Virus record (IMG/VR): IMGVR_UViG_3300024999_000029 | Location: 1 to 64,000 of that record | DNA: 64,000 nt | Reading direction: 5' to 3' (one strand) | Shown here: positions 1 through 64,000 of the stretch, one piece after another | Layout of the letters: each line of letters starts with the position of its first letter | How positions within the stretch are numbered: the stretch's first letter is position 1 | Made by a program: the position numbers and the translations under genes | The notes under the pieces: generated by a model | The model's input: only the letters and a program-made list of their open reading frames with translations | Database searches by the model: none | Told to the model about the DNA's origin: nothing

Positions 1-129
1 ACCATTGACCGTAAAATTGAACTGCTCCTTTGTGCCTACATTTTATACATCTAACATTTTTATTAATTTCATATAATCTAATTTTAGAGTAATTTTTCAT
101 AGTAACTCCTTTTAAATAAATTTTGTATT

Positions 130-405
130 TTAAAGCAATTTTCCTTCTGTTACTATTCTAGTAGGCGGAGGAACTGGCTCTTTAGGCACTTGAACATCTA
201 ACTTTATAAAACAATCTACATCAAAAGTATTGCACCCGCATTTGTCGCATTTATTATCTTCAAAGACCATGTTTTCAAAAGTTGAAGTAATGGTATCTTT
301 AGATGAATCTTCTTTCTCTTCAAATTTTGCATTTCTGCATTTTATACAAAATAACTCATAAGCAACCATTTTGGCATTTAATTTAAGTTCTATATTTTTA
401 CTCAT
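130..405 (-). CDS. Hypothetical protein with two CxxC motifs (possible Zn ribbon)
   Basis: CIKC and CDKCGC motifs; RBS upstream; stop codon lies inside a 7-6-7 boundary site (115-134). Confidence 0.6.
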   Translation of the reverse strand: MSKNIELKLNAKMVAYELFCIKCRNAKFEEKEDSSKDTITSTFENMVFEDNKCDKCGCNTFDVDCFIKLDVQVPKEPVPPPTRIVTEGKLL

Positions 406-422
406 ATTTTTCTCCTTTTATT

Positions 423-806
423 TTACATAAACAAAATCCTGTCTTCAAAAATTTCTTTCAGTGTTCTAATCAGCTCTTCATTCTCAATTTCATGAGAATC
501 AGTTATTACTACACTTTTCGGATTTTGTGAAATTAAAACACTAATTAATAAATCATCATAATTTATGTCATTCACTGGAACTATTCCAACATATTCATTC
601 ATGAACTCATCAGTAATATTTTCACCGCTATCATCATAATATCCATACATTCCATTACCACAAACAATAGTCATCATTTCATGTTTTGATTCTTGAATAT
701 TGGTAAGATGTTTAAGTAAGCCAACAAATTCTTGATATTCTTGTTTAATTAATTCAGCATCTTTTTTCTTACTGTATTCTTGAAAATCAATAATCTTTGC
801 ACTCAT
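423..806 (-). CDS. Hypothetical protein
   Basis: 127-aa ORF, packed 1 nt after the upstream gene. Confidence 0.6.
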   Translation of the reverse strand: MSAKIIDFQEYSKKKDAELIKQEYQEFVGLLKHLTNIQESKHEMMTIVCGNGMYGYYDDSGENITDEFMNEYVGIVPVNDINYDDLLISVLISQNPKSVVITDSHEIENEELIRTLKEIFEDRILFM

Positions 807-18752: not shown

Positions 18753-18803
18753 ATTCTTCTCCTTTAAGTTTTATATTTTTTGTTTCAACATGAAATGAAA
18801 ATT

Positions 18804-19601
18804 TTATTGAAATATTGATTTTTGTAAGCCTACTCCTGCAAGGGTTTCACTTTTCACAATTATTTCTAGTATGCGATTTTGAGCAATTTTATAGTAATTT
18901 TCATCTAATTCAAACCCTATGTAATTTCTGCTTGTATTTAAGGCGGCAATAGCAGTTGTTCCTGAACCTATACAATTATCTAAAACCGTTTCACCTTTGT
19001 TTGTGTAGGTGTTAATTAGCCATTCGCACAACTCTACTGGCTTTTGAGTAGGGTGCAAAGATATTGATGGATGAGGTTTTGAAAACTCTAATATAGATGT
19101 CGGGAATTTCATATCTCCTTTAGTTTCAACACATTTGAAATCTCCATAATTATTATTTTGCAAAACAGCATCATTCATCTTGCCCACAACACTACCTTTT
19201 TTATGACACGGATTACCTTTAATCTTTTGTGGATTATATATTGGTTGTTTTTTATAAAATACCATTATGTCCTCATGTTCCCTTAATGGCTGTTTATTAG
19301 CGTTTAAAAATCCACTTGATAAAACTTTCTTCCATATCAAATTATATCTATGTATTTTTTTGTTTGACAACATTGTCTCTGCAGTAAATTTATCTTGACC
19401 AAATAAAACTATTGCTCCATTATCTTTAATAATCCTTTCATACTGCTCCCATAGTAGTTGATAAGAAATTATTGTATCCCACTTGTTTTTTGTAGTTACT
19501 CCATAAGGTAAGTCACAAAGAATCATATCTATTGATTTATCGTCTATAAGTTTCATACCTTCTAAACAATCTTGTTTATATATCTTGTTTAACTTAATCA
19601 T
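18804..19601 (-). CDS. Orphan beta-class N6A/N4C DNA methyltransferase
   Basis: DCLEGM, ILCDLPYG (motif IV) before HPTQKPVEL and DNCIGSGTT (motif I); no adjacent restriction endonuclease. Confidence 0.9.
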   Translation of the reverse strand: MIKLNKIYKQDCLEGMKLIDDKSIDMILCDLPYGVTTKNKWDTIISYQLLWEQYERIIKDNGAIVLFGQDKFTAETMLSNKKIHRYNLIWKKVLSSGFLNANKQPLREHEDIMVFYKKQPIYNPQKIKGNPCHKKGSVVGKMNDAVLQNNNYGDFKCVETKGDMKFPTSILEFSKPHPSISLHPTQKPVELCEWLINTYTNKGETVLDNCIGSGTTAIAALNTSRNYIGFELDENYYKIAQNRILEIIVKSETLAGVGLQKSIFQ

Positions 19602-19655
19602 TTATGCCTCACTATTTTATATTTTAGTTCATTAAGATAAAACGAGAATTTTGTG

Positions 19656-19796: not shown

Positions 19797-20340
19797 TTCT
19801 TTCTCCTTTCTATAAAAATCCGATTTCATTGAGATTTCTAATTTTCAAACCTTACTCCCACAAGGGTTTCAAATTCGGTAGTAATTTTAATTTTCACAAT
19901 TTCATACAAATATGCTACATCTATATTATTTCTATAATCCAATGCGTCTTCATAATTATTATAAAAATATGCTTTATTTATATTTGTTGTTGGACAGCCA
20001 TACTCATTTAGATATTCATTTTCGCCAATATATTTAATAGCATATTTTACTTCTTCTGATTTTTCTTTCATTATTTTCTCCTTCGTTTAGCAGGTTACTT
20101 TTGTAGTATAAGCATTTAGGTCATTTGGCGTTTTATAATAAATGTTGTCTTGGTATGGGAATGTCGGATAATTTGGGTAACTTAGATAAAATGGGTATAT
20201 GACATTTTTATTATCTTCAAATTCCTCTGTTGTCGTTGTTTCTCTTATTAATTTCCCTTCGTTATCATATTCTTTAATGTTGGTTACTTTTTTCATAGCT
20301 TCCTCCTTTTATATTTAATTTAAACGAAAGTCTTATTTTA

Positions 20341-20748
20341 TTAACCGTTTCTACCTGCACCATATCCTGAATCAATATCTGCAAATCCATTATCCACATT
20401 TACAGCATTTATGGCTTCAATTATTCCATCAGAAAAATCACTATAATCAACATCATAATCAGGTTCACCATCTGACTCATCAATATCATCACCATCACCA
20501 AAAAATATAAAATCAGAATCAATATTTTCTTTAACATAATTTTCTGATGGCGTAAGATCCACTCCTGCCCAATCATATTCAAATAATCTACTACTTTTTA
20601 TCTCTGATAAAAGCTCTTCTCCTGTATATGTGTCATATCCATATTTATCTATTATTGGTTGTGCCTTTTCTTTATCTTTGACCCTTGCAAATACAGCTAT
20701 AAAACTACTAGAGCTTGAATTTGTTACAAAATCTGTGCGTATTTTCAT
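20341..20748 (-). CDS. TNSSS-motif protein 4
   Basis: Starts MKIRTDFVTNSSSSSF; ATGA overlap with upstream gene. Confidence 0.8.
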   Translation of the reverse strand: MKIRTDFVTNSSSSSFIAVFARVKDKEKAQPIIDKYGYDTYTGEELLSEIKSSRLFEYDWAGVDLTPSENYVKENIDSDFIFFGDGDDIDESDGEPDYDVDYSDFSDGIIEAINAVNVDNGFADIDSGYGAGRNG

Positions 20749-23804: not shown

Positions 23805-24080
23805 TTATATCTCCTCTTTTTTATATTTTTGATAAAAAGCACATTTGATTTAATTTAATTAGTATATTCATAATGAGAAACATCACAATATCCATGTATT
23901 AGTATTTCATTAAAACTCTTATCTGCATTTTCTGGCGTGATCATATGTGCGGTATATACTCCATTACTTGTTGTAAATAATAATAATTTGCTTCCTTTGG
24001 GATGCGTAACTTTTATACAAGAATAAATTTGTTCGTTAAACTTAACTCTCATATCCTCTCCTTTCTATCAAATACATGTT

Positions 24081-24491: not shown

Positions 24492-24531
24492 TTTTTATTC
24501 TCCTTTCCGTAAAAGAGTTATTTTAAAGCAA

Positions 24532-24768: not shown

Positions 24769-27562
24769 TATTGCTCCTCCTTCCGTAAATGACGATTTTA
24801 TCTAAGTTCAAAACAATAATAATCACATATAATTTTTATATTTTCACTGATTGCTTCTGTTTCATCATAACAATCAATTGACCAATGAATATCAGAGCAA
24901 AATTCTTTTAAGTCCTCAAACATATATTCATAAGCAAATAATATTTCTTTAACATCAAAGTCAGCCAATAGCTCTTTATATGATTGAGTTATTCCCATTA
25001 GTGATTTAATAGCATCAATAATTTGTCTTTCATCGGTGACAGACATATTTTCTGTGTCTATTTTGAAATTACTATAATCTTCATAATTTCGGAACATTAA
25101 AACTCTCATAATACATCCTTTCTAAGTCAAATAGCTTTTCACTGAACTTCAATTTCCTCAATAGATAAACTAGCAACATCAGATCTAAGTGCTTCATTTT
25201 CGATATAACTCAAAGCCTTTTCTAAACTATCATAAATTGCAAGTATTTGACCATATTCCCAAACTAAATAAACTTTCAAGGCGAATTCTCCTTATAAAAT
25301 ATGCGTTTCATCGTGTTTCTTAAATTTGTAACCCTTGTGGCTGTAGGGCTGTAGCATTAGCCATCTTTTATATTTTCACTATATTAACAATTTGTGTAGC
25401 ATAATATTTATATTTTAAGTTTGTACCCTCATTCAATCTTTCTACTAGAGATTCTTGGATTTTTTCAATTAAATCGCTGGTTATTTCTTCATCTATATAG
25501 ATGATCGTATTAAACAAATCTGGATTCTCATCACCATACGCTGCATAGGCTATAAAATATTTCTGTTCCATACCTACTCCTTTCAATGATATCTCTAATT
25601 TATTGTAATTTTTACCGCACATTGGACAAAAGTTAATTTTAATATCTGATAATTCTAACTCATCGTCGGCAATTAAATTACCATTTCCATCAATATAAAC
25701 ACCTTCACTGCCGTTGCCCATTAAATAATCTCTTGAATCTACATCTACGCTACAATATACACATATATCTTCCATAAAATATCTCCTTTCCATAAAATGC
25801 AAGTTTCAAAGTATTAAATCATCAATAACTCCGCCAGTAAGCTCAAATCTATCGCAATTATTTAAGTTGGAGCAGCATATTTTATACATAAGATCATCTT
25901 CCAAACTACTTTTTGCATGTTTGCATCTAAAACTAGGGTATACTGGACAAGGCAATTCTTCAAAAACTAGTTTCACTGGCTTGCTATCTGAAGGTTCATA
26001 TATAATGTAAGTCATATTTTCATCCATTAACAAACCTAAATCCTTGTCTTTCATATCTCTCTCCTTCCAATAAATCACAATTTTTATATAATTATTTGCC
26101 TACCATTTGTGATAATTGTTGTAATATATTTTGTATAGCAAAGTATTGCGGGTTCACAAAAGCAGTTATTGTATCTTGAAGATTGATTAAAATTACTACT
26201 GTTGGAGCTATTACCCCTATAAATGGAAGCAAACAAATTATCAGATACTCTGGATCACCCTCTCCTTCTTTCCATACCTTTATAGTTAATTTCCAAGATA
26301 TAATGGCAACAATTACTCCAAAAACCATCAATAATATATTTGTAATTCCGACAACATAAGATTGTTTCACAAACAATGGATATAAATTATCAACCGTAGT
26401 TCCTAACTTTATCGCAAGTTCTTTTAACATTTCTAAAAATTTATCCATTTCTTTCTCCCTTATCTTATTATATTTTTAATTATTAACATTTCTTTATCTT
26501 CAAATTCCACAATAACTTGATGTTCGCACTCATCACATTCATGTAAATCTTCTGAAAACTTACCTTTATACGGGCAATACTGCTTCCAATTCTTCTTTGT
26601 CATAACTATTTCGCATAAATGACTGTGTGGTATGTATTCCATTACAAGCACCTCTCAATAAAACCAATTTTTTAACGTAAATTTTCTATCTCAAATCTCT
26701 TTAGTTCTTCTAGCAGTTCATTATCTTCAAAATAAAATGGGTCTCTTTCTAACCCGCCTAACCAATTATTAATAAATTGTCCAAATCTCCAGTCAGGTAC
26801 TTTTCTCCAAACTCTTTCAATTTCACCCAAGAATGGCATTATTCTATTTGGATCTCTCACAAAATTACCTCCAATCATTTTATATTTTAGATTATAGGCT
26901 ATATATAAACTCATTACAAGTCATTTTTAAAAGAATGGGGGTAAATTATTACCCCAAAATAATCAAATTTTACGAATGCCCTAATTGCTCCCAATAATCA
27001 GCGTCTATTTTTTCTTTCTGTTGAATACTAAAGCCTTTGATATCATTGAAATTGAATACTATAACCATATAGCCATTGACTTCTTCTAAAGCTTTTTTAT
27101 TTGCAGATAATAGAACGCATAAAGCTTCCACCGCATCATCAATTTGCTGAGTGTTAACTAACAAAGAACAATTCGTTCTAAACATTTTTTAACCTCCTTT
27201 TAATTAAACGTCATTTCAATATGGCAGTGGTTATCACTAAGCGAAGACACTAAAATAGTTGAATTTCCAAACTTTATTCGCTTGCAATCTCCGTTAATAA
27301 CCTCTACTTTCTTTAATTCATCAATTGTCCCCACAATTTTGATTAATTGTCTGGCTAATTTTCTTTCAACAACATCTTTTTCAATCATTCCATCACCTCC
27401 TCGAAGTTAATAAACTCCAATTATTTTAAACGACTCACTTAAAGTGTATTTTATATTCAAAGGCTTTCGCCTGTTGCTTTTATTGTGACCAGTATGATCC
27501 TCTTAGCCTTTTCATTGTTGAAATGTAATTTTCTATGTATTTTTTGTAATTATAAGGCTCTT

Positions 27563-30228: not shown

Positions 30229-30341
30229 TATGCGGGTAAGAAATTTCATCTTACATGACTAACATCTTCGTCTAGTTACACAACCACACAGGCTGCACAA
30301 AGTTCGTCAAGCTCCATAGCGTCTTATTCCGCCACCGCATA
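30229..30341 (-). ncRNA. tRNA-like RNA, 113 nt
   Basis: Acceptor TATGCGG/CCGCATA, U8, D-arm GCG-GAATAAGA-CGC, T-like arm GTAAGA-TGAAATT-TCTTAC, ~63-nt insert. Confidence 0.65.
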
Positions 30342-38003: not shown

Positions 38004-38037
38004 TTTACTCTCCTTAAATTTATTTAAAATCTACATA

Positions 38038-39605: not shown

Positions 39606-42490
39606 ATTTTCCTTTCATACGATCACCTAAATTATCTTTACTCATTTTATTTCTCCCTTCGTTAAATATATGTTTTATTTAATTCAATCTCTTGCAGCAA
39701 TTCTTCTTTTACATCATTTCTTATTAAGTCTAATTCATCATGGTCAGAATAATGAGTTAGCACTCTTATTATATCGCCACTTCTCGTAAATAATTTTTGA
39801 GTACCATTAAATTTACACCAATACAAACCGAATGTTTTTCCAAAATCATTAGTGAACTCTTGAAGTATTGTTAAATCAGTTATTCTTTTCATTATTTATC
39901 CTTTCATTGAAATTAATCATATAATCCTATATTTTTATGTATAGCATCTCCTACAATTGTATATATTTCTACAAGTTTTTCGACTATCTCATGCCCTGTA
40001 ATAGCTTCATCTGGTCTGTACTTAGCAATTCCAGAATCTAATCCATGAGTTTGAAGAATTTCTATTACATTATTTGGCGAATACAATGCATTTAAATCAA
40101 CACCTTTTAACTTCTCAATAATTTCCTCTGTGTCCTTTTTTATATATTCATTTCTAGTCATAATTCACCTATTTTTTATTAATTTATCGTATTTTTCTTT
40201 GCTATACACCTACAACCGTAAGGTCTACAAATTTTATTTCCATTGCCTACGGTTTTAGCAATATCTTTTCCCGTAAGAATACAACATTGTTTAAACCCAT
40301 AATCATACTTTTTTAGAAACTTACAACATCCTCCATGCCAAATGTCATCACAATATTTAATTTCATAATCTGGTAATTCTATTTCCACCATCACTTTAGC
40401 CATAGCGATTCTCCCTAAAACATTCATTTTATTAAAATTCATACCTTCCACATCTAATTTCTTTATACATAATATCTTTATCATTATTATTGTTTGTATA
40501 AAATTCTTTAGTCTTTTTAAATGCAGCCAAAGAATAAAAATTATCTGTTTTACAAAACCAAACGTCGAAATAAGTATCGCATTTATACACTACGGAAATA
40601 TCTGTTGATATATAAAATGTCTGAGTCTCTTCATCAGGAAATTTTATCAATACCCCATCATCTACTTCTAAAATCAATAACTGACTCAGTAATTCCTCAA
40701 ATTCTTCATTGGTTTTATATGGCTTATCATCAATATCAAAGCCCGAAAATCCATACATTACATCATCAGTATCTTTCTTTATATTCCTTAAAGCATTTCT
40801 CCATACCTCGGCTAGTTCTTCTGTTTCACATATAATTACCGTATTTTTGGTTAACTGTGGAGCTTTGATTTCTAAATTTCCAATATTAAAATCTATTTGT
40901 TCTAACATAATTTCACCTCTTTTAATTTAATTACTTGCAACTTGATTTATTAGATAAGTCATTCTATCTAGATGCTTATCTGGTCTTATTTTAGTCTCAG
41001 TTTTATTAACTTTATTAAGTTGAGATACATTGCCCCATTTATTTAATACTTTTGGAGTATATTTTCTGTGTATTTGCCTATCATTTAATTGCCTGACGCT
41101 ATATTTTAACTCAGATATCTTTGGCTTTATTGCCGTAAGATGATTTATGAAATTCAAAGCCTCAATTTCATTTTTAACTTTTCTTCTTTCAATCATTATT
41201 TCTTGGATTTGTTTTGAATATTTATATCCACTACAAGCATCCATTCCAATATGATTTTCAATAAAATGCTCAACATCAGATCTTTTTCTATCACAAATAC
41301 TCAACTGCTCACGTAAATCTAAGATGTTTACATTAATATTTTCTGAAAGTTCTTCAATTCTTTGAGACAACCTATCTAATACTCCAATAGCAATACACAT
41401 TTTAATCACTCCTTTTATATTTTAGTTTATCATTGGTACTTAAAACCTTAATTTTATTTTCTTTTAAACTTAATATTTACTTTTACCTTTTTTTTATTTA
41501 TGTTTTCGACAATATCGTCTATCAATGTTTCTACTGCTTCTTCTTCATCTGCACAAATATCTGGAATACAGAGTCCATCATCCATTTTATATAATAAGCA
41601 TTCAGCCATTAATAATTTACTGTCTTCGTCTGACAATAGATAATGTTTGCATTCAACTCCTGTGTAGTCAATTATAATTATCTTTATAACTTCATCTGGA
41701 TAATAGCACAATTCATATTTCTCTGTTTCATATATGGTCATCACCATCTTGGTTTCCATTTCTGAATATTCTTGCTCATTAATTTGTTTTGTCATCTTTT
41801 TGTTCTCCTTTTATATTTTCATTAAAAATTTTGCACCTGTATATTTCTTTATTATGTCTTTCACATTTTCAAAATAACATTTTACACAATTTTTATAAGC
41901 AGTATCATATAAAACTATATCTTGTATTATATTCTCGTCATCTACTTCTATATACCCCCTAGTCGCTCCTAGATATCTAATTGCATAATTGTTTTTACAA
42001 TTGCCACTACATAAATAAGTACCACCACTGGGTTTTAAATGTTCAGTATGATTGGGCAATAAATAACCGTCCATCTCTCTAGTTAACTCATTTATCAATT
42101 CATCACAATTTTCATATTTCTTAATTGTAATAAGTTCCATCATTCTTTCTCCTTAATTTCCATAAAGATTCTATTTCATTTTAAAATCTATTAATAACTT
42201 CCTTTAAATCCTTCATATCATCTTCTGTCAATATAATTTCTTGAAATCTATGAGTTCCATGTCTTAATATATACCATATAGTTTTAAACCTATTTTTAAG
42301 TTTCGAGAAGAAACCATGTTGTTCAGAATAAAAGGCATCAATGCTAATATCAATATAATATTCTTTTGGTTCCTCACCATCAAAAAGCTTTCCAATTCCT
42401 ATAGATTCTGTTCCACAATCACACTGTATTACTATTTTAGTATTGTTTTTGTCTGTTAATATCATCGTTTCTCTCCTTTTTAGATAAGTC

Positions 42491-43006
42491 TTAGATTTTA
42501 ATTAAATTTGGATTATCATGTATATTTCCAATTATTTCTGTTTGTTCTCTTGTAAAGCTATTATTTTGTATATCTCCCAATGCAGTTCTAAATTGATGAA
42601 ATGGTGCTGAAAAATAATCAATATCTCTAACTACTACAAATCCTCCATTGACATCTATTACAATCCATTTTCTTTGCTGTTCATCTTGTAGTATATCTCC
42701 AGTGTATATCTTATTTTCTTTCTTATCTTTAAGCCTTACATACTGTCCTACTGTTTCAGAGTCTACTTCATTCCAAATAAAACTATCTTTTCCTAATACT
42801 TCGACAATATAATATTTTTCTTCCACTTCTACTAAGTTTCCAAATACCATTTTGTTAGAATTAATTGTGCCTTTATCTATGCAAATGCCTCTAAACTTTA
42901 TCTTTCTCATATGCCCTCCAATCTCAATAATACTCGTATTTGATTTAAATTTCACTACTGAATGAAAAATCAGCTTCCCATTTCTCGTCACAGTCATCAC
43001 ATTCAA
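42491..43006 (-). CDS. YopX family protein (likely start at MRKIKFRG)
   Basis: IKFRG, TVGQYVRLKDK..IYTGDI, EIIGNIHDNP. Confidence 0.85.
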   Translation of the reverse strand: MNVMTVTRNGKLIFHSVVKFKSNTSIIEIGGHMRKIKFRGICIDKGTINSNKMVFGNLVEVEEKYYIVEVLGKDSFIWNEVDSETVGQYVRLKDKKENKIYTGDILQDEQQRKWIVIDVNGGFVVVRDIDYFSAPFHQFRTALGDIQNNSFTREQTEIIGNIHDNPNLIKI

Positions 43007-46893: not shown

Positions 46894-47850
46894 AATTGTT
46901 TCTCCTTTTATATTTTATATTTTAGGGGTAAATAATATAGGTACACCTTTATCATCAATTAAAAAACATCCATCTTCATTTTTAATAATAGAAATACTAT
47001 ATTTATTTAATAACGCTTTAAACTCTTCTAAAAATTCACTGTTAATCATTTTCTCTCCCTTTTTATCAAAATAAATCTGTAAATTCCATTACCTTACAAC
47101 CTTCAAATTCTGCTCCCTTTTGTGTCTTATTTGCTTGTAACTGTTCTTTTTGTTCAATGAAAAAATAAGGATATTCTAAATATGTTTTATTATCCAATTC
47201 GTCAACATTAAAACCTAGTGTGCTTACGTAATTAATTACTTGCTGACACTGACTTTCATCTGTAACATGTATTGCTACTTCTCCATTTTTGAAGTTTTCT
47301 TCTAAAAACCTATTATTCATGTATTTTCCTCCATTTTATATTTTATTTTTAAATAAAATCTGATTTATATTAAATACCATGGCTTAATTCTTTGAAATTC
47401 TCTTGGGGTAAAAAATGTTACATAAGGCAAGTCGAAACCTTCCATATAAGCCTCATCCCACGTTCTTTTACATCTTGGATGATATCCGTCATCACTGTAA
47501 TATAATTGCCCATTTTCATATTTATATGGAATGCCCCATTTAGTATAAAATAATTTGCTGTGATGGTTTAAATTATTTTTTAGTTCTGTAAATTTAATAC
47601 CAAATCCAACGTCTATCTTTTCTATTTCAATTCTTGCCTTTTCTAATGCATTTAACATTTAACACCTCCTAAATCACTATAAATTTTAGTGTTTATTGAC
47701 TTTTTCATACATTTCCCGAAGTTCTTTAGCGCATTTTTTACAATAACATGGTACTGGATAACCATTCTGCCAAACAATATCAGGAGATTCTTCTAATTTA
47801 CATCTAGGACATTTCATATTAATCCTTCCTTTCCAAACGAAACTTAATTT

Positions 47851-48384
47851 TCATATACTTTTCTTCTCTTGTTTTATACTACGTTTCGGATGAACTACAT
47901 TAGGAGTAAATCCTGCTTTAATCAAAGCATTATTCCATGAACCAAAAAACCGTAAAACTCTACCAAGAGTAAGTTCATCCACATCATAACAGAATGGCAC
48001 TCTGTTTAATTCTATGTATTTTTCTTTTATTACATTTAATGCATCTATTTCATTGTTTGATAATGGTTTTTCTTTTAATAATTCTAATCCTGCATTAGAT
48101 AATGCGTTTTCCCATGATCCAAATTTATCAATAAAAATAATGGCTTTGGGGAATATCATTTCTGTATTATGAGGACTTCTTCCTAATTCTTTTGCTTTTA
48201 ATTTGAGTATATTAATCAAATCTTCTTCAGTTAAACTTTTTAATATAGCAGCATTAAAATTAGTTAAATGTTTAAAATGCAGTTTTATTATAATTATTTC
48301 TTCTTCGCTATATTTCTTTAATTCATTATTTTTAATCGACTCTTGTTTGAAATACTTAAGTATTTTCTCAGCTTCTTCATTCAT
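47851..48384 (-). CDS. Protein with two homing-endonuclease-associated repeats
   Basis: LGRSP...FGSWENALSNAGL and LNRVP...FGSWNNALIKAGF. Confidence 0.7.
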   Translation of the reverse strand: MNEEAEKILKYFKQESIKNNELKKYSEEEIIIIKLHFKHLTNFNAAILKSLTEEDLINILKLKAKELGRSPHNTEMIFPKAIIFIDKFGSWENALSNAGLELLKEKPLSNNEIDALNVIKEKYIELNRVPFCYDVDELTLGRVLRFFGSWNNALIKAGFTPNVVHPKRSIKQEKKSI

Positions 48385-51054
48385 CTAAAATCACCTATTT
48401 ATTCAAGGTTTTAATATACTTTAATTATACTAAAAATCTCATTAAAACTCAAATTTGATATTAATTTACGCACCAATATTGGCTACCAATACTACTTGTT
48501 CAACATCAATATTAATTTCAGTTACTTTTAATTTAGCTTTTTTAAAATCATCGCTACTCAATCTTGATAGTATTTCTGCACTCGGCTCGTCTTTAGCAAT
48601 AACTACCATCTCAAAATCTTCACACCAACTTGCGTTATCTATTCGTTCAATTTTAAAACATTTCATTATGCCCCTCCTCATTTAAATTAAATTCAAGTTT
48701 CATTGAATTTTAATAATTACATTACCATCTATATCTTTTAAAGTTATACCATTATTGTCTTGTATTAGCTCTCCATTATTTGTTTTAGATATTATCGAAC
48801 CTTTAAATGTTTGATTATCATATGTTTGATTACCATATTTTTGCTGTATATTATGATACGAATATATTCCAAATATAATGAAAACAATTAATATAATTAA
48901 CATATTTTAATACTCCTTTCTTAAATTAAAATTCAAATTTGATTTGAAAATGCTAATATATATTTCATCCTTGCAACTTGTAATTTTAATCCTTTATCTA
49001 AATTTTCCATATTGTTAAATTTATCATAAAGCTCTTGCACTTTTTCTAAAGTTAATAAAAATCTTTTGTCGCAATTTACTTTTATACCTGTCTGCATACA
49101 CAAACACTCACATAATTCCGTATCACCTCTATTAATAATGCCTAATAATTTTACAGTGTAAGTTTTGTGATGTTCGGCATATCTAGCTTTCCCACTTATA
49201 AATACATCAAATGCATAAACTGCGTTTAAGTATAACTTATCTTTATTTCTCATATTCCACTCAGCTCCAATTAAATTTCATTTTTTAAAATACCCAACAA
49301 TTCTTTCAGCATCTTATTATTTTCCTTAACCATTTCATAAACTTCTTCAACAAATAATTCCTTTTCTAGCATTGCAATATTATTACTTTTCTTTCTCAAT
49401 CTACTAATAACTGCAACCAACTTACTTTTATATGCTTCTGGAGTATTTTCAACCTTCAATATCTCTTTTTCTTCCTTAACTTCATACGCATACTTAACTA
49501 ATCTATCCCATTCTTCATATGTAAACATCTTTTCTACTGCCTCAATTGCTTCTTTATTAATATATGAACCATCTGATTCATTTCTAGGTTGAATATTTGC
49601 AAGGCTTCTTCTGGTTTTATACACACTTATTCCAACCATTTCAGTCTTTTGCTTCTTAGTTAATCCATGTTTCCAGACTGTGCGGAAGTCTTTTTTGGTT
49701 ATTGTAATTGATTTTTGCATATGTTTACCTCCAATATTTCAATAAACGAGAGAGTTTATTCAATTTCTAATTCTAAAATAGTAATATTTTGATTATTATT
49801 CATCATAAATATTGCAAACGTTTTAAAACTATCAAAAGTTTCTTCCCATATTTCTTCATCGTTATTAATATTATACTTCCATTTCATATAAACTCGCATA
49901 CTATATTTCTCCATTTCATTAAAAGTTTCATTTTAAATTAACTCACTAAGCTATCAATCTTTTCTTGTAGCGTGGACAAATCTTCTTTTAGATTCTTTAA
50001 TTTTAATATTTTTTGGTTGATTTCAGTATCTAACATATTTTTAACCTCTTCATTAAATCCATCTTTATTAATTAATTCTTTCAAAAATCCTTTTATAATT
50101 TCTGTCTGAGGATATCCTTTAGTAATATCTTTAAACTCCCAAGACTTAAAATAATTATTAACAAACATATTTTCTATTAGCTGATAAACTGCATCACATG
50201 CTATTGCATTATTGATTTCTTCTTTATTGTCTAAGTATATCTTTTTTCTAAAAGATTGCTGATCATAGCCTAATCCAGCTAACCACTTTTCCAAAGGTTC
50301 AACTTTTGTAATGCATCTATAATCTTCATCTAATAAATAAGATACAATTCCATCAAAATATCTTCGTCTTACATTTTCAAATCTTTCAAACATCCAAGTC
50401 TCAACATCATCACATATACTACCAAAAACTTCATCATTAAATTTTTTCTGCAATGATTCAATGGTTTTTATAGTTTTATCAAGCACCAAATCTTTTGTTT
50501 CTTCCATATTGTCCTCAAAATCAAATTGACTTCTATACATAGTCTCCTCCTATTAAAATAATACTTTCATGGCAATTTATAAGAATATACCCATTTAGGG
50601 AATTTACCATCTTGACATAATCCTGATCTAACTCCATGCGCCCATCTATGTAATAATCCTTTTTTATTCATTGTTAAAAGTAACTTTGATAATTCCTTAC
50701 ATTTTGGCGCACCTAATCCTATAAACTCAAATTTTGTATTATATTTATCAATAAACGCATTAACAAAATCGTCATCTAATATATCCACAAATGCACAAAA
50801 TTCTTTTGATTTTAAATAATTTATAATCCATTCCTCTTTATCTGTCATGCCATCGCCTCCAATCAAATTTACTTTTATATTAATGTCTACAATCTGGACA
50901 ATCATCGTAGTTATGACCATGCTCACACATTGCACTTAAATACTCTTTATACTTACATTGCCATTTTTGAAAATGTATAATGGCTCTTCTATAAAACAAA
51001 TTAAGCCATAATTTCTGATACCATTTTAAGTTATATCCATCCCAAAAATTTATT

Positions 51055-51270: not shown

Positions 51271-52222
51271 AATTTTCTCCTCTTAATGGACAATCTTTAT
51301 CTCTTATATCTTCTACTCTATTCACAAATTGTTGCCCAGATACTGCTCCCTTTATTTTGCAATAATATCTATCGCTTAAAAAATAACACTCTCCACAATT
51401 TTTAGGTAACTCATCCACTACGATTTCTCTTATTTTCATATTGCCTTACCTTTCTTAATAAACTTTCACTTTTATCTAATCCCTATATGTTCGATTGTGT
51501 TTCCGCATTGAGTACATTCCACAATCACTTGTTTTCCACCATCATAATAATCCCAAGGTTTAATATTTATCTCTTTGCCAGATTTTTCAAGGTCAATTGA
51601 ATTATCATATTCAACCCGTTTTATTTTCGATTTTGCTCCGCATTTTTCGCACTTTATAGTAAATCCTTTATCCACATTCTCACTCCCAATCAAATTTTTC
51701 TTTTATATAAACTTTGATTTTCCACTTGCATATACTTTAAAAATCTATCATATATTTCATCTTTTACACTATAGCCAATTTTAATTGCTGCAATTAAAGT
51801 ATCTTCAGTACTTATATTCAAACTTTTTGCTTGTTCCACTGTATTATGAAAAATTGGATCATTTTGATATAATTTTAGCAATTCATTATCATTTTCTATT
51901 ATTTCACTTATATCTCTCATTTTATTTTCCTCCATTTCTGCAACCCTACTCTCCGTAAGGCTTCAAATTAATATTTCCATATAAAACTGTGATTTTATGG
52001 CATTTTATATTTTTCTATTTCTCTTAACATTGGGATAAAATTATCATCTATTTTGGTTAAAAATTCATCCCTAAAATGCTCTATTGTCATATCTGGTGTT
52101 ATGTATCCTAATTCTAAATTATGCTTTAAAAATGCAAACAATTTATTAATGAATTCTTGTAATTTTTCTGAGTTTTCCATATATTCCTCTCCTTTCTAAT
52201 TTTATAAAATATCCTTTTCATT

Positions 52223-52870: not shown

Positions 52871-53565
52871 CCTCCATTTTATTAAAAATTATAAAATTCT
52901 TTTACTATTTTTATGCTGTTTTTTATCTCGTCTGTTAAACTACTATTGTAAGCATCATAGTCTAATAATTCTTTTATATCTTGCAAAAAATAATCGTCTA
53001 CCCATATAGCTTTTTCAATTTCTAATTCCGCCTGTAGTATATGTGGAGATCCTTTTGTTTTTGCTAAAAATTTTATAGCAGACACTACATCTTCGCTATA
53101 TTTTTTCAACAAATAGTTTCTTGAATCTTCAAATTCTGAATACATTAACAATCTCATGCTATCCTCCATCCCATAAATCTATAATTTTAACTTAAATATG
53201 TTATACAATACCAAATTCCTATAGCTCCTATTAAAGTTATCAGCAATCTCATTAAATCAATGTATTTTTCATCTACTTTTAATTTTTCTAAGATATTATC
53301 CTTAATTCCAATTAATGCTGTAAGTAAAATTACGATTACTATTGCGATTGTCATTATATCTCCTTATTCAATTTTTCTATCTTTATTATATCACCGCAAC
53401 CACTACATAGCTTATAGAAAATTACCACTCCTTTCTCCGAATTATACTTAATTGTTTTGTTTGGCTCAGTTTCACAATCTGGACAAACAAACTTTTCATC
53501 TTTTAATATAGCTGATTTAGTTATTTTTGTTTTTGTATTTTTAATCATTGATATATCTCCTCTTT

Positions 53566-54898: not shown

Positions 54899-55846
54899 TT
54901 ATATATATTCCTTAATATCTTTTCTTGTCTGATACTGATATTTTATATCTTTTCCAAATCTTTCATTGATTTGTTCATATTCTGCTTTTTCTAAATCTCT
55001 ACCTAGTTTAGCTTTTAATTCTTTTGCCATTTGAATCATTCCACTAATCCATATATTTCTAGGATTCAAATGAGGATTTTTATAATCTTCAGCTATTCTT
55101 TTTATCCTATGGTTTATTACTATAGGGTTAAGCTTCCCATTATTATCTCCATGTATTGTTGGTCTAACAACATAACCAGTATCATGTATAGGCATATATT
55201 CTCTCCTGCTAGACGTTCCCTTGCCGTTATTTGGATAATATATATCTATATCTAGCGCATCTTTTATTATTTTAATAGTATTGTCTTTTACTTCTAAGAT
55301 GCGTTCTGTACCATCATCTCTTGTTAACATTAATAAATTTCCATCAACATCTGTTTCTTTTAAATTTACTAATTCCTCAAAATGTACTCCACTCACTCCT
55401 TCAAACAATAATGCTATTAAAACTTTATCTTGTGGATTTTTGCAAATGTTTAATATTTTATTTAATTCTTCTTCATCTTTTATAAATCTTTTTCTTTTTG
55501 CAATTTGATTTACATATCTGTCCATATTGTTGGAATTATACTTATCAAATAAATTAATCTTTGTGTCTAAATATCCATGTTGTATGCAGAAAGCTACGTA
55601 TTTTTTCAAATAACTTCTTTGAGAATTGGCTGAATTTGTAGAGCCTAATTCCAATTGATTCATTAGCATTGCAACTTCATCATTATTAAATTCATAAATG
55701 TCTTTATTTAATTGACTCTCCATACTATAAGTTTTTTCAAATAAATACCTTACCATCTTTTGAGTGCTTTTAGCATAGTTTAATGTAGTAAATCTTTCTT
55801 TTAATTCTTTATTATACTTTAACTTTTCTTTTAAATTAATACTCAT
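54899..55846 (-). CDS. Tyrosine-recombinase-fold protein lacking catalytic residues (SPbeta MrpR/YopR-like repressor candidate)
   Basis: SAM-like N-domain; LLFEGVSGVHFEELVNLK lacks the catalytic Arg; PRNIWISG replaces HxxR; no LGH. Confidence 0.7.
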   Translation of the reverse strand: MSINLKEKLKYNKELKERFTTLNYAKSTQKMVRYLFEKTYSMESQLNKDIYEFNNDEVAMLMNQLELGSTNSANSQRSYLKKYVAFCIQHGYLDTKINLFDKYNSNNMDRYVNQIAKRKRFIKDEEELNKILNICKNPQDKVLIALLFEGVSGVHFEELVNLKETDVDGNLLMLTRDDGTERILEVKDNTIKIIKDALDIDIYYPNNGKGTSSRREYMPIHDTGYVVRPTIHGDNNGKLNPIVINHRIKRIAEDYKNPHLNPRNIWISGMIQMAKELKAKLGRDLEKAEYEQINERFGKDIKYQYQTRKDIKEYI

Positions 55847-55862: not shown

Positions 55863-57164
55863 TTATATTGCTTTAAAAAAATCAGATATATTTTTAATAT
55901 CTTTTGGCTTCAACTCTTTTTTAGTAATTCCTTTTCCTTTAAGTGTTTCTGCGTCTATCTTTTCAATTTCATCTATTTTATTTTTTAATTTATCTCTCCA
56001 GTTTGAATCTCCTTGAAACTTAGCGAATATAGCTATATATCCTATAAACATATTTTGTTTATTCATAATACTATTATCTTGAAACTTTTTTATATTATCC
56101 CTAAACACATCTGGCTTTAAATATATTAAATAGTCAAAACATTTATTCAACCAATCTGCTATAATGTCTGCTTCCGCTCTACCAGAATATTTGAAATTAC
56201 TTTGAATTGCCTTAGTAATGATTTTGTTTTCTACTAACGCTCTTCCTGTGTCGATTAATATTTTATCAGATACAATTTTACCCTTCATATCACTATTATC
56301 ATTAATGCTTTTAATTATCATATTTTCAAGAGAATCAGTATTCATCTCCGCCTTATCATCCTCGGACATATCATTTCGTTTAAATGACTGATATATTAGT
56401 TTTTTTGCTTTCTTTTCATTATACCTAGTAATATTTACACCAAACTTATACTTTAGGTTTGGATTAATTTCTAATGCAGTTAAAATACCTACAGACCTAT
56501 TATATCCATCTACGATATTTAATTTACCAGAAATTATTTTTAACATTTTGTTTTTATCATTATATCTCCATTCATCAGTGCCATCTACTAATAAATTAAG
56601 AGATAAGTTGTCATTTGCTATAAACGTACCATTTAATAATTCTTCACTGATTTCTTTATATGATTTCGGGTTAGGCTTAATTTCTTCAAATATTAATCCA
56701 TTTCTTTCAATTTGATGCATTTTTCTTTGTGTTTCAGGATTATATATTATAACCATACGATTATATAAATCTGCAATTTCTTGTACAGTTAACTTCACAT
56801 GATAATGATTGTCGTTCATTTCTTCTGCATCTTTAAAAATTATTGGGTATTTATCTACTTTTTCTAAATTTTCATAATAATCTACTGATTCAGCTTTTTC
56901 TGAATCTAAAAAATAATTATCTGGATTTACGCACTCTTCTTCTGTAGTCATATATACAGCATCAGTAAAATGATATAATAATTTTGCTTTTAGAGTTCCA
57001 AGAGGAATGTTGTTATTTAATATACCTATTACATTACCTTCAATAACCCTTTCGCTCAAAAGCTCTACGATTTTTCCCCTAATATCCTTATTTTTATTGT
57101 ATTTTTCAATTAGATAATACAATTCTCTTTCCAGCTCATATCTCTCTTTTTTCATCTTGGTCAC
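55863..57164 (-). CDS. DGQHR/DndB-like (ParB-superfamily) protein, SPbeta YopQ-like
   Basis: YNPETQR, NIVDGYNR motif; directly upstream of the recombinase-fold gene. Confidence 0.65.
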   Translation of the reverse strand: MTKMKKERYELERELYYLIEKYNKNKDIRGKIVELLSERVIEGNVIGILNNNIPLGTLKAKLLYHFTDAVYMTTEEECVNPDNYFLDSEKAESVDYYENLEKVDKYPIIFKDAEEMNDNHYHVKLTVQEIADLYNRMVIIYNPETQRKMHQIERNGLIFEEIKPNPKSYKEISEELLNGTFIANDNLSLNLLVDGTDEWRYNDKNKMLKIISGKLNIVDGYNRSVGILTALEINPNLKYKFGVNITRYNEKKAKKLIYQSFKRNDMSEDDKAEMNTDSLENMIIKSINDNSDMKGKIVSDKILIDTGRALVENKIITKAIQSNFKYSGRAEADIIADWLNKCFDYLIYLKPDVFRDNIKKFQDNSIMNKQNMFIGYIAIFAKFQGDSNWRDKLKNKIDEIEKIDAETLKGKGITKKELKPKDIKNISDFFKAI

Positions 57165-58674: not shown

Positions 58675-61600
58675 TCAACACAATTCTTTAAAACATTCTT
58701 TAAAAGTATCATTAGAAATTTCTATCCATCCTAATTTATCAGATTCAAGTCTTACTTCTCCGCCAAGGAATCTATAATTTTTATCTTCGGGAGTATGCCA
58801 TATGGTATTTTCTTTTATATTACTTCGTTTTTCAGTTTCAAAACCATCTTCATCATAAATTGGTACTACATATGCCTTTATGCACTTATATTCACTCATG
58901 TTTCATATTTCCTTTCTATTCCCATTTTAACTTTTGCCCACACTCACAAATGTTTAATCCTTGCCAATGTTTATAATATCCATCTCCTATACTTTCACTT
59001 AATTCTGCTCTACACGATGAACATAGAGCGGGACTCCATGGCTTTATTATTGGATTAGTTGGCATTTGTTTATTCAATGCCTCAATGGCTAAATCAATAT
59101 GCTCTGAAGTTCCATAATAACCACCATGTTCGTCAATAGCTTCCTTTTCACTTTTTAGTTTTTCTATAGCTTCCATAATATCCATATTGGTTTCCTTTCA
59201 ACATAAAATCTATTTTTTGTTTAATTTATCTCTGTAATTTATAAAATCTTTTGAATTAACCAACTTGCTATATTCTTCATTATTCATTTCAAGCCAATTC
59301 TGCAAAGTCATTCCTGTGAATCTAATATGCCATGTCAATATTTTAAATTTTATATCATCATTCATAAAATCACTCCTTCTGAACCTTGTATCTCTTGGTG
59401 CTGTAGGGCTTAAATCACGACAAAATACTGGTTTCATCGTGTTTTGTCATACATGAAATAACCTCTAACTGCCTTTTTAAGTTTACTTTTAATATTAATA
59501 TCTTCATTTCTTTCCTCTAAATATAAAACTCGGAAATTACTTAATTTTGTTAAGTCCAATATTTCATATATTTCTTTTTCAAAATCTTCTAATATTATAT
59601 CTAATTTATTTTTGAAATCTTCAAACGTATTAAATCCAAATATAAAATCATTAAAACCGCCCGACTTATCATAAAAGTTAAATCCAAATAATAAATATCT
59701 AAATTCAGTATTCATATAACTGCCTCCCTCTTGTTAAAATGTTGGTTTTACTTTAATTTTTCTAACGTAATTGCTTCCTCTTTTAATCTTTTTACAGTTG
59801 ATTCATAGCTCCCAATTAAAAATTTAAGTGTACTCAATCTGTCTATAATAGCCTCATTTTTGGTTTTATGATAACCTGAAATATCTTTCTCTGTGTCTAT
59901 TTCTTTTTCCCGTATTTCACCATCATCAGTTATCTGAAAATATAACATTTTTCTCCCCTTTTTTAAATGTTGGATTTATCGTTTAATAATATTTATCTTT
60001 AATCTTTTGCATAAGTGGTAAATAATCTTCTTTCATGTTCTTAGTGAACTGTAATAAATCTATAATAGTCATCTCTGGTTTTAAATAACCGAGTTTTAAA
60101 TTATGATTTATAAATTCTTCCAATTGTTCAATATTTTCTATAGGTTTTTTCATACTTATAATACCCTCCTCTCGATCAAACGTTAGATTTATTCAATTAT
60201 TAGTTATCTTTAAATACATCTTTTATTTTTCTATGGTAATCATCCAAAATTCTTTCTTGTTTTTTAGTTAATTGGTCTTTAGGTATTTTTTCAAGTTTTA
60301 TCAAATCGTTTAAAGTATACACGCCTCTTAATTTTCTTATTATAAATTTAAATAGCTTACTTATATATTTAATAATTGATATAAATACCTTTTTGATATA
60401 ATCAACTAGTAATCCAATAATTACACCAACCACTAATAAAATAATATCATCTATATTTCTACTAAAAAAATCTATAATAAACATTTCAACCTCACTAAAT
60501 AAATTATATGAAATCCCATTTCATAGTAATATTAAATCATATTACATATGTCTTCTTCTGATTCAACAATTGGCTTTACTGATTCCCATGCTTTTAACAT
60601 AGCTTCTTTAATTTCTTCAACTGAAACAAATTCTAAATATTTTTTAACTGTATATTTATTTCTACCTGCCGTATCTAATATTCTATACTCATAATCATCA
60701 CCATGAGTGATATATTGAATATTTCTTTTTCTCTTTGGTAATAGCCCTATACTGGTTATTCTAAAATTGTTTGTATAATCGCTAAACCTTATATTTATAA
60801 AAATTTTATCGCCATTTTCTCTTTTAATTTCATGATCGTAATCTTTATACATATTAACCTCCATTGCCTCAATTTTACCATAATAATACTTTCAATCAAA
60901 TAGATTATTCATTTAAAGTTTTTCCATTCTTACAGTTCCACACTTAGGACAGGAATATAAACCTACCTCTGTTATACAACTGTTATAACCATTATCCCTA
61001 TCTACAACAAAACTACCTTTAATCCTTTCAAAATTTTCACTATTTTTATCATTATCGGAATCATATTCATCGTCCCAATAATAATTCTTTTTATACCCAC
61101 ATACACATTTCAAAACACTTAGCCCCCTTCTGTTATCTGTTATAATTAAATATTATTTTTTATTTTATTCATATCCATAAGCTTCCCATCCATCTTTCTG
61201 ATGAAAGTTAATCCACATTACATATGCTGGCTCATCATCACCTGTTAATCTAATTCCATTAATGCTTTCTTCGTCTTTATCATACATATCAGATTCTTCG
61301 GCAGTTAGCATATGTAGAGGCATATAACTATAAACATCATCTACTATATACCATTTTTTATAATTATTAGAAACTACAAGTATTGGTTTATTTAAATATT
61401 TATTTTTTATATCTTGTTTTGAAAGTTTAATTAATATATTCATAAAGTCCTCCATCATCTGTTACCTCAACATACTATTATTGATTTCAATCCCATCTCA
61501 AATTCTCTACATCTTGAAGTGGACGTGCTATTAATTTATAAACATCTTCTATAATTTCTATTTTAGACATTGTATCTATATTGATTATATCTAAAAATTT

Positions 61601-63905
61601 TACCTCTGCTAAATTAATTATAAATGGACTAAATGTAAAAACATTAATATCTTTATTACAATTATCTTTTAATAACTCTACTTGTTTAGCGGGGTGAAAC
61701 CTATCCCAATTTTCCATATTATTATTTGGCACATAGTATACGTTTAAAGAAGTGTATATTTTCATAATTAATTCCTCCATATTTTATTTCTTGATCCTCA
61801 ACCCATTTTATTATATATCATTATAATTTACGTCACTAAAACGTGATTGGTGACGTAAACTTGAATCTGTTATACTAAAAATCATACTGGAGTCCAAACA
61901 TATCCATCGTCATCTGTTACTTCTACTAAAACTTCTCCTAGCTCATCAATATTTCCCCAGCAAGCGAATGCTCTTGTTATATGCATATCTACATCTTGCT
62001 GACTACATTCTTCATTATAAACCTCTTCACCATTTAAAAATCCTTCGACTCTTGCCAATTTTATCAACCCCTTTTTACTATCTGTTTTCATTTTTTAAAT
62101 GCTATTATTATATCTTTGTTTTCAAATTCTGATTTGTTAAAAAGTTCATTAATTATATTAATAATATCAGTTACTAATTGATTATTTAAATCATCCATCA
62201 TATTACTCCTTGCAATTATATTTGAGTTCTGTTATACCATAAAACACATCATTTATATTAACACGCTAGTGCCATCCTAGATATCCCTAATGCCATTAAT
62301 ATATGCTCAACTACCACATTGACAGACTTAGGATTATAATTTGAAAAATCTAGTACATACTCACCAATTGCATACTGTTTTCCTGATACTTCGTTCATGT
62401 TGCTGATTTGTTTTAAATCCTTATGTGATACTTTAATCTTTATTAAATCAGATAAAAATATTGCATCTTTCTTAACATTAGCTCCCACTTTAACTGGAGG
62501 CTTAAATTGTCTAAGAGTTAAATATCCATCAAATGTATTACTAGTGGCAATATCTCCATATCCAAAATAAATTATATTATCTTTAATCATTTTATATCTC
62601 CTCTCTGTTATCTTAATAAATCAAGTCTTTCATTTATTTAACTGCTTTTCTAAAAAATTTACAGTCATATTATAATAGCCAGATGGCTCAGTATATTGCA
62701 TACAGTCATAATCATTCTGTAATTCTGCATATTCGAGAGTATTAGCTATATTTAAATCTGTCAGTATTTTTTCTATCTTCCCATTTAATACCAACATTTT
62801 CCCTCCAGTGTTTTCACGTTGTTTTAAAAGTTTTAGTAACTCTTTAGGTATTTTATTCTTCATAGTCTCACCTCTTTCTGTTATACCATAAAATAGTTCT
62901 TTTGTTTTATTTTGCTAATAATTTATCCACTTTTTTATCAAAAGCAGCGTTCATTTCCTCTCTTAGCTTTATTTTATATGTTGCTTTTATCTCATCTACT
63001 ATTTCTTTAAATGCATCTTGAATCATTTCTTCGACATCACTGGGATCAAACAAATATGTATCGCTTCTTTCTAAATCATCCCTAAATTGTTCTATTATTA
63101 TTTCTTTAAAAGCTTGTTTTAGTTCTACCTCATCTTCCGAATTAAATATCTTAGCAATATTTTTCATAACATTCTCCTTTATTATATTTTAGTTATGTCA
63201 TATTTCAAGCAAACAGTTCTTTCATATAGTTTTAAATAATAACCCATATTCGCTTAATTTTATATATTCTTTTGATATTATCTTTTCATTTTCTTTAATG
63301 ACCTTATAAAAACATTCGTTAAATATATCTCTATCTTCTAACCATGTTTTAAAATGCTTTACAGCAGTCATTCTTTCTGATTCTGGATACTCTGCTCCTA
63401 AATCTGTTATATGAGTATCTGCTTCGAGAACATAATAAATTTCTTTCCCTAAATTATCGTGTTGTTCCGTATTCATTTTCACAATTTCATCTAGCATACC
63501 AAAATCTGGATCACCTAATTCAATTCTCAATTCTTCTAATCCTTTTGCTTCTGTCATACTTATGCCACCTAATAAAGTTAATATTAATTCTTCCTCTTTT
63601 GTGTTATATGTCTTCCACATTGGACTTAAAACTCTTGTAAATCTATTCAATAGATTCTCGGTAGACAATTCAGCAAACATTCCAGAGTCAGATAAGAAAC
63701 AATATAACTGACTTACCCAACGATAAACATCATTTGTTTCCACGTATTGGGCTTCACTTCCAACATATTTTGCTATCATATACTTTAATATTTCAATCCT
63801 ATTCAACTCTATTTTATTAGCTTCTAAATAATCTGAAAACCAATTTTTAGAGAAAAGAATTATTTGCTTATCAAGTTCTGTTATCTCATGTCTATTTTTA
63901 TACAT
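58675..63905 (-). other. Array of small hypothetical accessory ORFs (similar arrays at 23.8-27.4, 34-37, 39.6-42.5 and 47-53.9 kb)
   Basis: Co-oriented 60-230 aa ORFs, most with their own RBS, many delimited by the 7-6-7 site. Confidence 0.7.
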
Positions 63906-64000
63906 ATCCGACCTCCTGTTATATTATTTTTTTGGTTAAAAATAACCTTTTATTTTGAATTACATTTAATACATTTAATAGGTAAATCTGTTTTAAATCT

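Follow-up and report, generated by a model that had tools for sequence, protein, structure and literature searches.

This locus raises the question of whether a short palindrome that recurs at gene boundaries marks places where a phage exchanges single genes and, if so, by what means. The window, by which we mean the whole 64,000-nucleotide stretch analyzed here (positions 1 to 64,000 of IMG/VR virus record IMGVR_UViG_3300024999_000029), belongs to an SPbeta-like phage of groundwater origin. An earlier note on this DNA had listed 48 copies of the palindrome nWTRAAA-N6-TTTYATN and had likened them to an integron array of mobile cassettes. Our analysis shows that the palindrome is a conserved junction; every copy has a 6-base "address" of its own, and the genes found there differ between related phages to the point of being unrelated.

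The motif is indeed present at the positions listed before: when the 48 sites were scored against the pattern, 17 matched exactly, 20 with one mismatch, ten with two and one with three. A strict 18-mer has 27 matches on both strands of the window, as compared with 2.4 in shuffled sequences (maximum 8), and a relaxed 18-mer has 49, as compared with 6-16 in shuffles, 42 of the 49 being intergenic or overlapping a stop codon. The shuffle comparison proposed in the earlier note therefore places the motif far above chance, yet spacing provides the sharper test of its reality, as TRAAA-Nk-TTTYA occurs 24 times at k=6 and 0-10 times (mean ~4) at other values of k. The arms keep a constant spacing of 6, the 49 spacers include no palindrome, and every spacer is unique in its genome; moreover, the window has fewer pairs of near-identical spacers than would be expected (5 against 13.2, P=0.006). 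At least nine sites that had been overlooked (63208, 60895, 60175, 53173, 51689, 48442, 47679, 42927 and 40415) were validated by their conservation in a related phage, and the total in the window is about 57. The impression that the second arm keeps the same TAA/TGA degeneracy proved to be a selection artefact, the unfiltered position reading T19 G9 A6 C5.

It could be argued that such a motif is a compositional accident of AT-rich stop-codon and ribosome-binding-site contexts, given a genome of 29% G+C with many A and T runs in its intergenic DNA. This explanation is refuted to the point of retaining practically no probability: one specific spacing is preferred, shuffles give far fewer matches, the motif is absent from Staphylococcus phage K (30% G+C) and from SPO1, where counts are not above chance, and exact spacers are conserved across phages.

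We then focused on a second phage from the same aquifer (hereafter, the relative), whose core DNA is ~80% identical to that of the window phage and whose MrpR protein is 86% identical, and which has almost no accessory genes in common with it. The sites of the two phages form a collinear chain of 38 pairs with exactly the same spacer, or 34 after removing four false sites located within homologous genes, while control chains built with scrambled spacers had a mean of 6.4 and a maximum of 11. Eight of the pairs were predicted beforehand and then found on extending the relative's contig. In 28 of the 34 pairs both 40-nt flanks are unrelated, and identity forms an island of exactly 18 bp that drops to ~0.3 within ~8 nt. 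Within that island the spacers are identical while degenerate arm positions differ in 17-44% of pairs, and this between phages whose core DNA is only ~80% identical. The sites are listed below in window coordinates; "relative" is followed by the position of the partner with an identical spacer.

115..63954, minus strand: whole array of junction sites, about 57 in number, defined by the motif counts and spacing given above
63936..63953, minus strand: site, spacer GGTTAT; relative 4145; left flank unrelated
63208..63225, minus strand: site with weak arms, spacer GAACTG; relative 4856
62616..62633, minus strand: site, spacer GACTTG; relative 5098
62239..62256, minus strand: site, spacer GATGTG; relative 5348
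60895..60912, minus strand: site with weak arms, spacer AATCTA; relative 5750
60175..60192, minus strand: site, spacer CTAACG, the same as in its partner while both arms differ; relative 6372
59203..59220, minus strand: site, spacer AATAGA; relative 7112
53173..53190, minus strand: site, spacer TTATAG, opening a slot with a 212-aa gene in the window and empty in the relative; relative 12646
52204..52221, minus strand: site, spacer AGGATA, closing the slot opened at 53173..53190; relative 12663
51689..51706, minus strand: site, spacer GAAAAA; relative 13345
51458..51475, minus strand: site, spacer GTGAAA; relative 13584; also a variant breakpoint
50553..50570, minus strand: site, spacer GTATTA; relative 13894; variant breakpoint at spacer/right arm
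49919..49936, minus strand: site, spacer TGAAAC; relative 14228
48686..48703, minus strand: site, spacer CTTGAA; relative 14811
48442..48459, minus strand: site, spacer TTTGAG; relative 15004
47837..47854, minus strand: site, spacer ATTAAG; relative 15224
47679..47696, minus strand: site with weak arms, spacer ACTAAA; relative 16143
42927..42944, minus strand: site, spacer TACGAG; relative 19018
42162..42179, minus strand: site, spacer TAGAAT; relative 20123, preceded there by an extra 71-aa gene
41440..41457, minus strand: site, spacer TTAAGG; relative 20291
40415..40432, minus strand: site, spacer TGAATG; relative 20930
38024..38041, minus strand: site, spacer TGTAGA; relative 21245
36654..36671, minus strand: site, spacer TAGTAA, left flank homologous and right flank not; relative 22354; variant breakpoint 2 nt past the right arm
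35443..35460, minus strand: site, spacer TATTTC; relative 22824
31486..31503, minus strand: site after tRNA-Cys, spacer TGCTTA; same spacer after the 3' end of the relative's tRNA; variant breakpoint
30339..30356, minus strand: site, spacer TAATAG; relative 27796
26070..26087, minus strand: site, spacer ATTGTG; relative 33266, found after prediction
25792..25809, minus strand: site, spacer CTTGCA; relative 33490
25294..25311, minus strand: site, spacer CGCATA; relative 34046
24509..24526, minus strand: site, spacer TAACTC; relative 34667
23832..23849, minus strand: site, spacer TGTGCT, opening the slot of a radical-SAM operon; relative 34885
20324..20341, minus strand: site, spacer TAAGAC, closing the radical-SAM slot; relative 36446, with unrelated genes between
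19812..19829, minus strand: site, spacer TCGGAT; relative 37199
19637..19654, minus strand: site, spacer TTCTCG; relative 37460
18790..18807, minus strand: site, spacer TTTTCA; relative 38509
Starts 115, 1018, 3616, 3884, 4721, 24066, 24783, 26657, 29950, 30204 and 30820: sites of the earlier list without an exact-spacer partner or outside the compared range
Starts 31050, 32096, 34271, 34516, 37239, 49741, 51980, 58660, 59419, 59733 and 62887: the rest of the sites in that same class

Slot lengths vary freely between the two phages. One slot is empty in the relative, where sites 12646 and 12663 abut at a distance of 17 nt with no gene between them, and another (spacers TGTGCT and TAAGAC) holds in the window a radical-SAM/SPASM operon, an I-HmuI-like endonuclease gene and four paralogous small genes, their place being taken in the relative by unrelated genes. 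This radical-SAM slot spans 20341-23804, and its four small paralogues form a 52-nt repeat family at 20699-22028. The comparison thus bears out the proposal that the sites are boundaries at which promoterless units of a ribosome-binding site and an open reading frame swap between related phages. The same note had taken the variable spacers to argue against homology-dependent exchange, whereas they are slot-specific and conserved between phages, the opposite of that claim and exactly what could confine exchange to the same slot.

Variants of the relative, 98-100% identical elsewhere, place the swaps at the sites as well. Seven of their eight swap breakpoints lie at a site, as had been surmised: three at the left edge, three at the spacer/right-arm boundary or at or within 2 nt past the right arm, and one around the site; these breakpoints map to the site only, the position of a crossover within an identical 18 bp not being resolvable from sequence. 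The arms segregate with their flanks and the spacer stays constant. All eight contigs of the window's own phage are identical, so that recent events cannot be mapped in it.

Integron cassettes offer an obvious comparison. An integron attC site is 57-141 bp long, with R''-L''/L'-R' imperfect repeats and a GTTRRRY core; each cassette has its own site, and the order of the array is free. A true integron, in which cassette-borne attC sites fold as single-stranded DNA and an IntI-like integrase inserts and excises them, would account for promoterless single-gene units split by recombination sites and for a stop codon within the site, as in some attC inverse cores. However, the sites described here are 18 bp long, without the GTTRRRY core, extrahelical bases or any other attC architecture, and they stay as a fixed ordered scaffold even around an empty slot, their order and identity being conserved while cassettes change rather than travelling with them. 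In addition, Pfam scans of the large open reading frames found only an MrpR-like protein and no IntI or attI context, and in the window and the next 12 kb no adjacent integrase or cassette promoter is apparent. The integron analogy is accordingly not supported, and we regard a true integron as highly improbable.

The same junction was found in other phages of the family. SPbeta has 17, 12 and 6 strict copies in three stretches, all of them intergenic and with the TAA a real stop in many; its sites are concentrated in the early region and are found in either orientation with respect to the genes. The count is 22 in Geobacillus virus E3 (3.8 expected) and 11 in the C. difficile phage LIBA6276 (2.8 expected), and the arms are common to all three genera. 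Comparisons among SPbeta, Goe11 and SPR gave 27, 21 and 19 collinear exact-spacer pairs; in 11, 7 and 8 of these neither flank is related, and in 5, 9 and 7 just one flank is unrelated. In the SPbeta family, homology-block ends reach a density of 17.7 per kb at sites, as compared with 4.6 per kb in intergenic DNA elsewhere (a ~4-fold difference) and 0.66 per kb in coding DNA (27-fold). Spacers common to SPbeta and the window were considered and rejected, since the 5 pairs, with a chain of 2, are no more than chance. In the SPbeta literature covered, which did not extend to the 1999 genome paper, we found no account of the junction motif.

We next describe how the site is built into its surroundings. 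Its coding-strand sequence is AAAWTWM-n-ATRAAA-N6-TTTTAW, and as a rule a GAAAGGAG-type ribosome-binding site begins no more than a few bases further on. All 28 coincidences with gene ends reported before (22 open reading frames ending at site start +15 and six abutting the site) match the open reading frame table, and the presence of a stop codon in the site holds; since the genes lie on the minus strand, however, that stop falls in the coding-strand left arm. For the same reason the left arm often gives the upstream stop and the right arm lies just ahead of the next ribosome-binding site: the left-arm TRA is the upstream stop in 13 of 42 sites, the stop is 5 nt upstream in six more, and in most sites the right arm is 11-24 nt ahead of the next start codon. 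Sites had also been said to flank RNA genes; one does follow tRNA-Cys, but this is the sole RNA gene detectable in the window and the plural does not stand.

Such a fixed position relative to the upstream stop and the next start is what would be expected of an intercistronic RNA hairpin over the stop codon, acting in the processing, stability or translational coupling of polycistronic early transcripts. Nevertheless, the arms vary independently, a G in arm 1 is never paired with a C in arm 2, A-C mismatches are frequent, and the predicted folds reach only 0 to -2.5 kcal/mol, half of them no better than shuffles. Because the arms lack co-variation and fold weakly, an RNA hairpin was rejected; it would also leave the slot-specific conserved loops, the empty slot and both SPbeta orientations unexplained, and we give an RNA-level element very little chance. 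A sigma-70 promoter or an intrinsic terminator at the sites was likewise rejected, as good sigma-70-like promoters and terminators are few in the window and located away from the sites, which indicates that the sites lie inside long operons.

This location brings to mind an operator array for a dimeric phage regulator, either a roadblock or silencer similar to stoperators or an early-gene factor, with recombination as a by-product. Annealing proteins of the Sak4/Erf type, together with RecA, would then use the site as an 18-bp microhomology, as has been proposed for the PeSL elements of T4-type phages, since nothing else is conserved between the unrelated genes. Several features agree with this: the half-sites are independent, with their centres separated by ~11 bp, as is typical for helix-turn-helix dimers; the sites lie in long operons with few sigma-70-like promoters or terminators and are concentrated in the SPbeta early region; SPBRE, the element bound by MrpR in SPbeta, has the same left arm (A[T/C]AAAA); in the SPbeta family the majority of mosaic boundaries lie away from sites; and there are precedents in stoperators (PMC9283540) and PeSL (PMC2839356). 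However, an operator requires the arms and not the spacer, while conservation is higher in the spacers than in the arms, and much higher than in core genes; tandem sites without an intervening gene have no obvious regulatory use, and sites 17 nt apart or after a tRNA misfit a per-gene control element. As the primary explanation we therefore find an operator array rather unlikely, even if its incidental use as microhomology is plausible and operator and exchange roles could coexist.

The explanation that we favor, with confidence only a little better than even, is that the sites are protein-recognized recombination junctions whose common arms and slot-specific spacers allow same-slot cassette exchange. 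As had been suggested, an asymmetric 6-bp spacer between inverted arms agrees with the geometry of a tyrosine-recombinase core site. Because the arms are the same across genera, while the spacers are slot-specific, asymmetric, unique within a genome, poor in near-duplicates in the window and conserved beyond core genes, we infer from the sequences that a protein recognizes the arms, that strands are exchanged inside the site and that the two spacers have to be identical. The quasi-palindromic arms (ATRAAA and TTTTAW) would presumably be bound by one conserved phage protein as a dimer, and the asymmetric 6-bp spacer of each site, conserved between related phages, would be its address. A cassette would then consist of a right arm, a ribosome-binding site, one or more open reading frames and the next left arm, often the source of the stop codon. 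If a cell contains two related genomes, exchange could occur at a site and, with the same spacer present only at same-slot sites, would do so in register, so that a gene could be replaced by an unrelated one with gene order, reading frames and translation signals intact. The logic would be that of heterospecific lox/FRT cassette exchange.

It is also possible, though we place this below even odds, that SPbeta-like phages (of Bacillus, Geobacillus, Clostridia and relatives) have a dedicated heterospecific site-specific recombination system, in which one protein module acts on the arms and joins matching spacers only. Candidates for such a module are the Xer-like YopP, the DGQHR/ParB-fold YopQ and the inactive recombinase-fold MrpR. 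In the window, a YopQ-like DGQHR gene, an MrpR/YopR-like recombinase-fold gene and a divergent repressor reproduce the arrangement of the SPbeta lysogeny module:

54899..55846, minus strand: MrpR/YopR-like recombinase-fold protein (Pfam MrpR_N_CB and MrpR_C_cat), without Arg-I and the HxxR box
55863..57164, minus strand: YopQ-like protein of DGQHR/DndB type (ParB fold), 28% identical to SPbeta YopQ (E=1e-33), its homologues matching the family
54226-54864, plus strand: repressor with LexA-like helix-turn-helix and S24 peptidase, divergent from the neighbouring MrpR-like gene and placed as yopS is in SPbeta

The MrpR-like protein, whose gene sits beside the YopQ homologue as in SPbeta, is a candidate for binding the sites, a role that the earlier note had offered as an alternative, but not for catalysis, and the YopQ-like protein is a second candidate binder. 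YopQ-like DGQHR proteins were found only in this phage group, and a sequence search of the window's protein against solved structures gave no match. Xer-like genes are present as yopP in SPbeta, as gp148 in E3 and as one gene in LIBA6276, lying beside yopQ/yopR in SPbeta and E3; none was found in the window or the next 12 kb. Those 12 kb contain only small open reading frames and a fragment of an MrpR N-domain; this fragment, an 86-aa open reading frame ~7 kb past window position 64000, is the MrpR N-terminal core-binding domain alone. As regards the repressor, its LexA-like helix-turn-helix and S24 domains suggest SOS-cleavable control of the lysogeny switch.

A number of observations weigh against protein-mediated exchange at the sites. 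Sequence alone cannot separate site-specific exchange from short-homology recombination on 18-bp identity. Taken by itself, the uniqueness of the spacers does not reach significance, nor does the depletion of near-identical spacers when measured in SPbeta (P=0.2), and the pairs treated as orthologous were selected for having the same spacer, so that the identity profile overstates how conserved the spacers are. Moreover, one of the eight variant breakpoints is not at a canonical site, and 75 of 93 mosaic block ends in the SPbeta family are away from sites. The intact tyrosine recombinase that the earlier note had suggested looking for was sought in the window and the next 12 kb, where no catalytically competent one was found; a cognate enzyme with the R-K-H-R-H/W-Y active site was not found in the window, whose sole recombinase-fold protein, the MrpR-like one, lacks Arg-I and the HxxR box, the same as published for MrpR. 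In SPbeta, MrpR ChAP-seq peaks, obtained from lysogens, lie only at SPBRE, a different element (PMC10516654). Finally, a laboratory phi3T-SPbeta hybrid crossed over within long identical late-gene stretches, that is, by ordinary homologous recombination; its two real crossovers lie inside 3-kb and 13-kb stretches identical in both parents, and the hybrid therefore says nothing about the sites.

It is useful to set the array against known systems. Heterospecific lox/FRT sites are used in recombinase-mediated cassette exchange, and dif is a natural tyrosine-recombinase core site. Similarly to these, the junctions have two inverted arms around a 6-bp asymmetric spacer, with arms common to all sites and spacers that differ, and sites at equivalent positions in different genomes have the same spacer, an indirect sign that partner sites share it. 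Unlike lox/FRT, the arms are only 6-7 bp of A/T, or ~14 bp with a weak left extension, dozens of different spacers occur in one natural genome, and recombinase and strand exchange are only proposed here. The PeSL of T4-type phages is a composite early promoter and stem-loop terminator, alike within a genome (PMC2839356, PMC4122927). Both are repeated intergenic motifs that lie among small accessory genes and mark the ends of segments inserted, deleted or replaced between close relatives; however, the junctions have no promoter (no sigma-70-like hexamers), fold weakly and are each unique by spacer. In cluster A mycobacteriophages the immunity repressor binds stoperators, asymmetric 13-bp sites that follow a single consensus, point in the direction of transcription and lack a slot-specific part (PMC3029335, PMC9283540). 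The junctions are similar in being tens of short-site copies in short intergenic gaps across the operons of a temperate phage, but their core is palindromic and their spacers are slot-specific. With SPBRE (PMC10516654) they share the phage family, an MrpR homologue in the window, the left arm and the overall size; SPBRE, however, has ~10 copies at promoters, a single fixed "spacer" AATATG and a TATATA right half. Identity of the site with SPBRE was rejected, as SPBRE derived from 7 SPbeta promoters differs in spacer and right half, and the junction sites of SPbeta are a separate and much larger class. Overall, the array works like heterospecific recombinase sites, with a PeSL-like location and a stoperator-like distribution, and lacks what defines integrons, SPBRE, stoperators and PeSL.

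Other short elements accompany the sites. A second, directional motif, AATATAAAA, has 57 copies against 13.6 expected, 54 of them on the coding strand (for example, at 1528-1536, 4409-4424, 16705-16713, 41413-41421 and 46906-46921). It usually lies 0-5 nt ahead of a GGAG ribosome-binding site, comes after the palindrome where both occur, is present in the relative and not in SPbeta, and may be a phage-specific promoter or translation enhancer. A ~50-nt repeat with a small hairpin of CCTTAC-GGAGAG-TAGGG type adjoins sites at 18801-18849, 19823-19871, 25316-25366, 36665-36713 and 51930-51990; it is also found in the relative and resembles the stem-loop annotated downstream of SPbeta yonO. At several neighbouring sites (62239-62275, 62616-62650 and 62888-62920) the right arm is followed by a short leader, GGTATAACAGA or TAAGATAACAGA, which is common to the relative.

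Regarding the phage itself, the window sequence is identical to groundwater metagenome contigs of 152-349 kb. The 349-kb IMG/VR contig holds the window as bases 1-64000, other assemblies of the phage being 152-154 kb with nearly the same first base, and it may be a concatemer. In the window, GC skew is strongly negative and almost all open reading frames are on the minus strand; they encode Pol III alpha, a RecD-like helicase, an NAD ligase and a Thg1-like enzyme. By polymerase, the closest cultured relatives are large C. difficile phages (56% identity). A megablast of the replication block against phage records gave no match, a scan of isolate genome contigs found no genome with a relative, and a metagenome scan yielded only the two phage types already in hand, the window phage and the relative. 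A small acid-soluble spore protein (57435-57620), which points to a spore-forming host, is encoded together with the Thg1-like tRNA-His guanylyltransferase (38038-38874) and a glutathionylspermidine-synthase-like enzyme (45428-46651). A TnpB (IS605 OrfB) element at 27588-29028 is a clean 1.4-kb insertion, its flanks being contiguous in the relative.

Whether phage mosaicism arises at special linkers or by random illegitimate recombination followed by selection has been debated since 1980. In Botstein's modular theory the linkers were reportedly postulated as ordinary homology, and convincing examples are said to be few. The junctions recall those linkers, and the boundary sequences of lambdoid phages, in being short conserved sequences between modules proposed to direct exchange; unlike them, they have a defined palindromic motif with an addressed spacer, and single-gene resolution. 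They give a testable, concrete basis to the old idea that phages evolve by module exchange at fixed linkers, in the form of a defined 18-bp junction across a family of large temperate phages that includes the genetically tractable SPbeta of Bacillus subtilis. Even as a regulatory motif used as microhomology, the junction marks the entry points of gene flow in these genomes. If a dedicated recombinase were found, this would be a new kind of system; otherwise, it would be a variant of site- or linker-mediated cassette exchange. Should the spacers indeed be addresses, the array would be a natural counterpart to engineered cassette exchange, would account for diverse early and accessory genes (defence, counter-defence and host takeover) on a constant backbone, and would offer an orthogonal set of docking sites for phage engineering. 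Were the system a dedicated one, dozens of single-gene slots could re-assort between co-infecting phages or resident prophages with synteny kept, amounting to programmed sex for the accessory genome.

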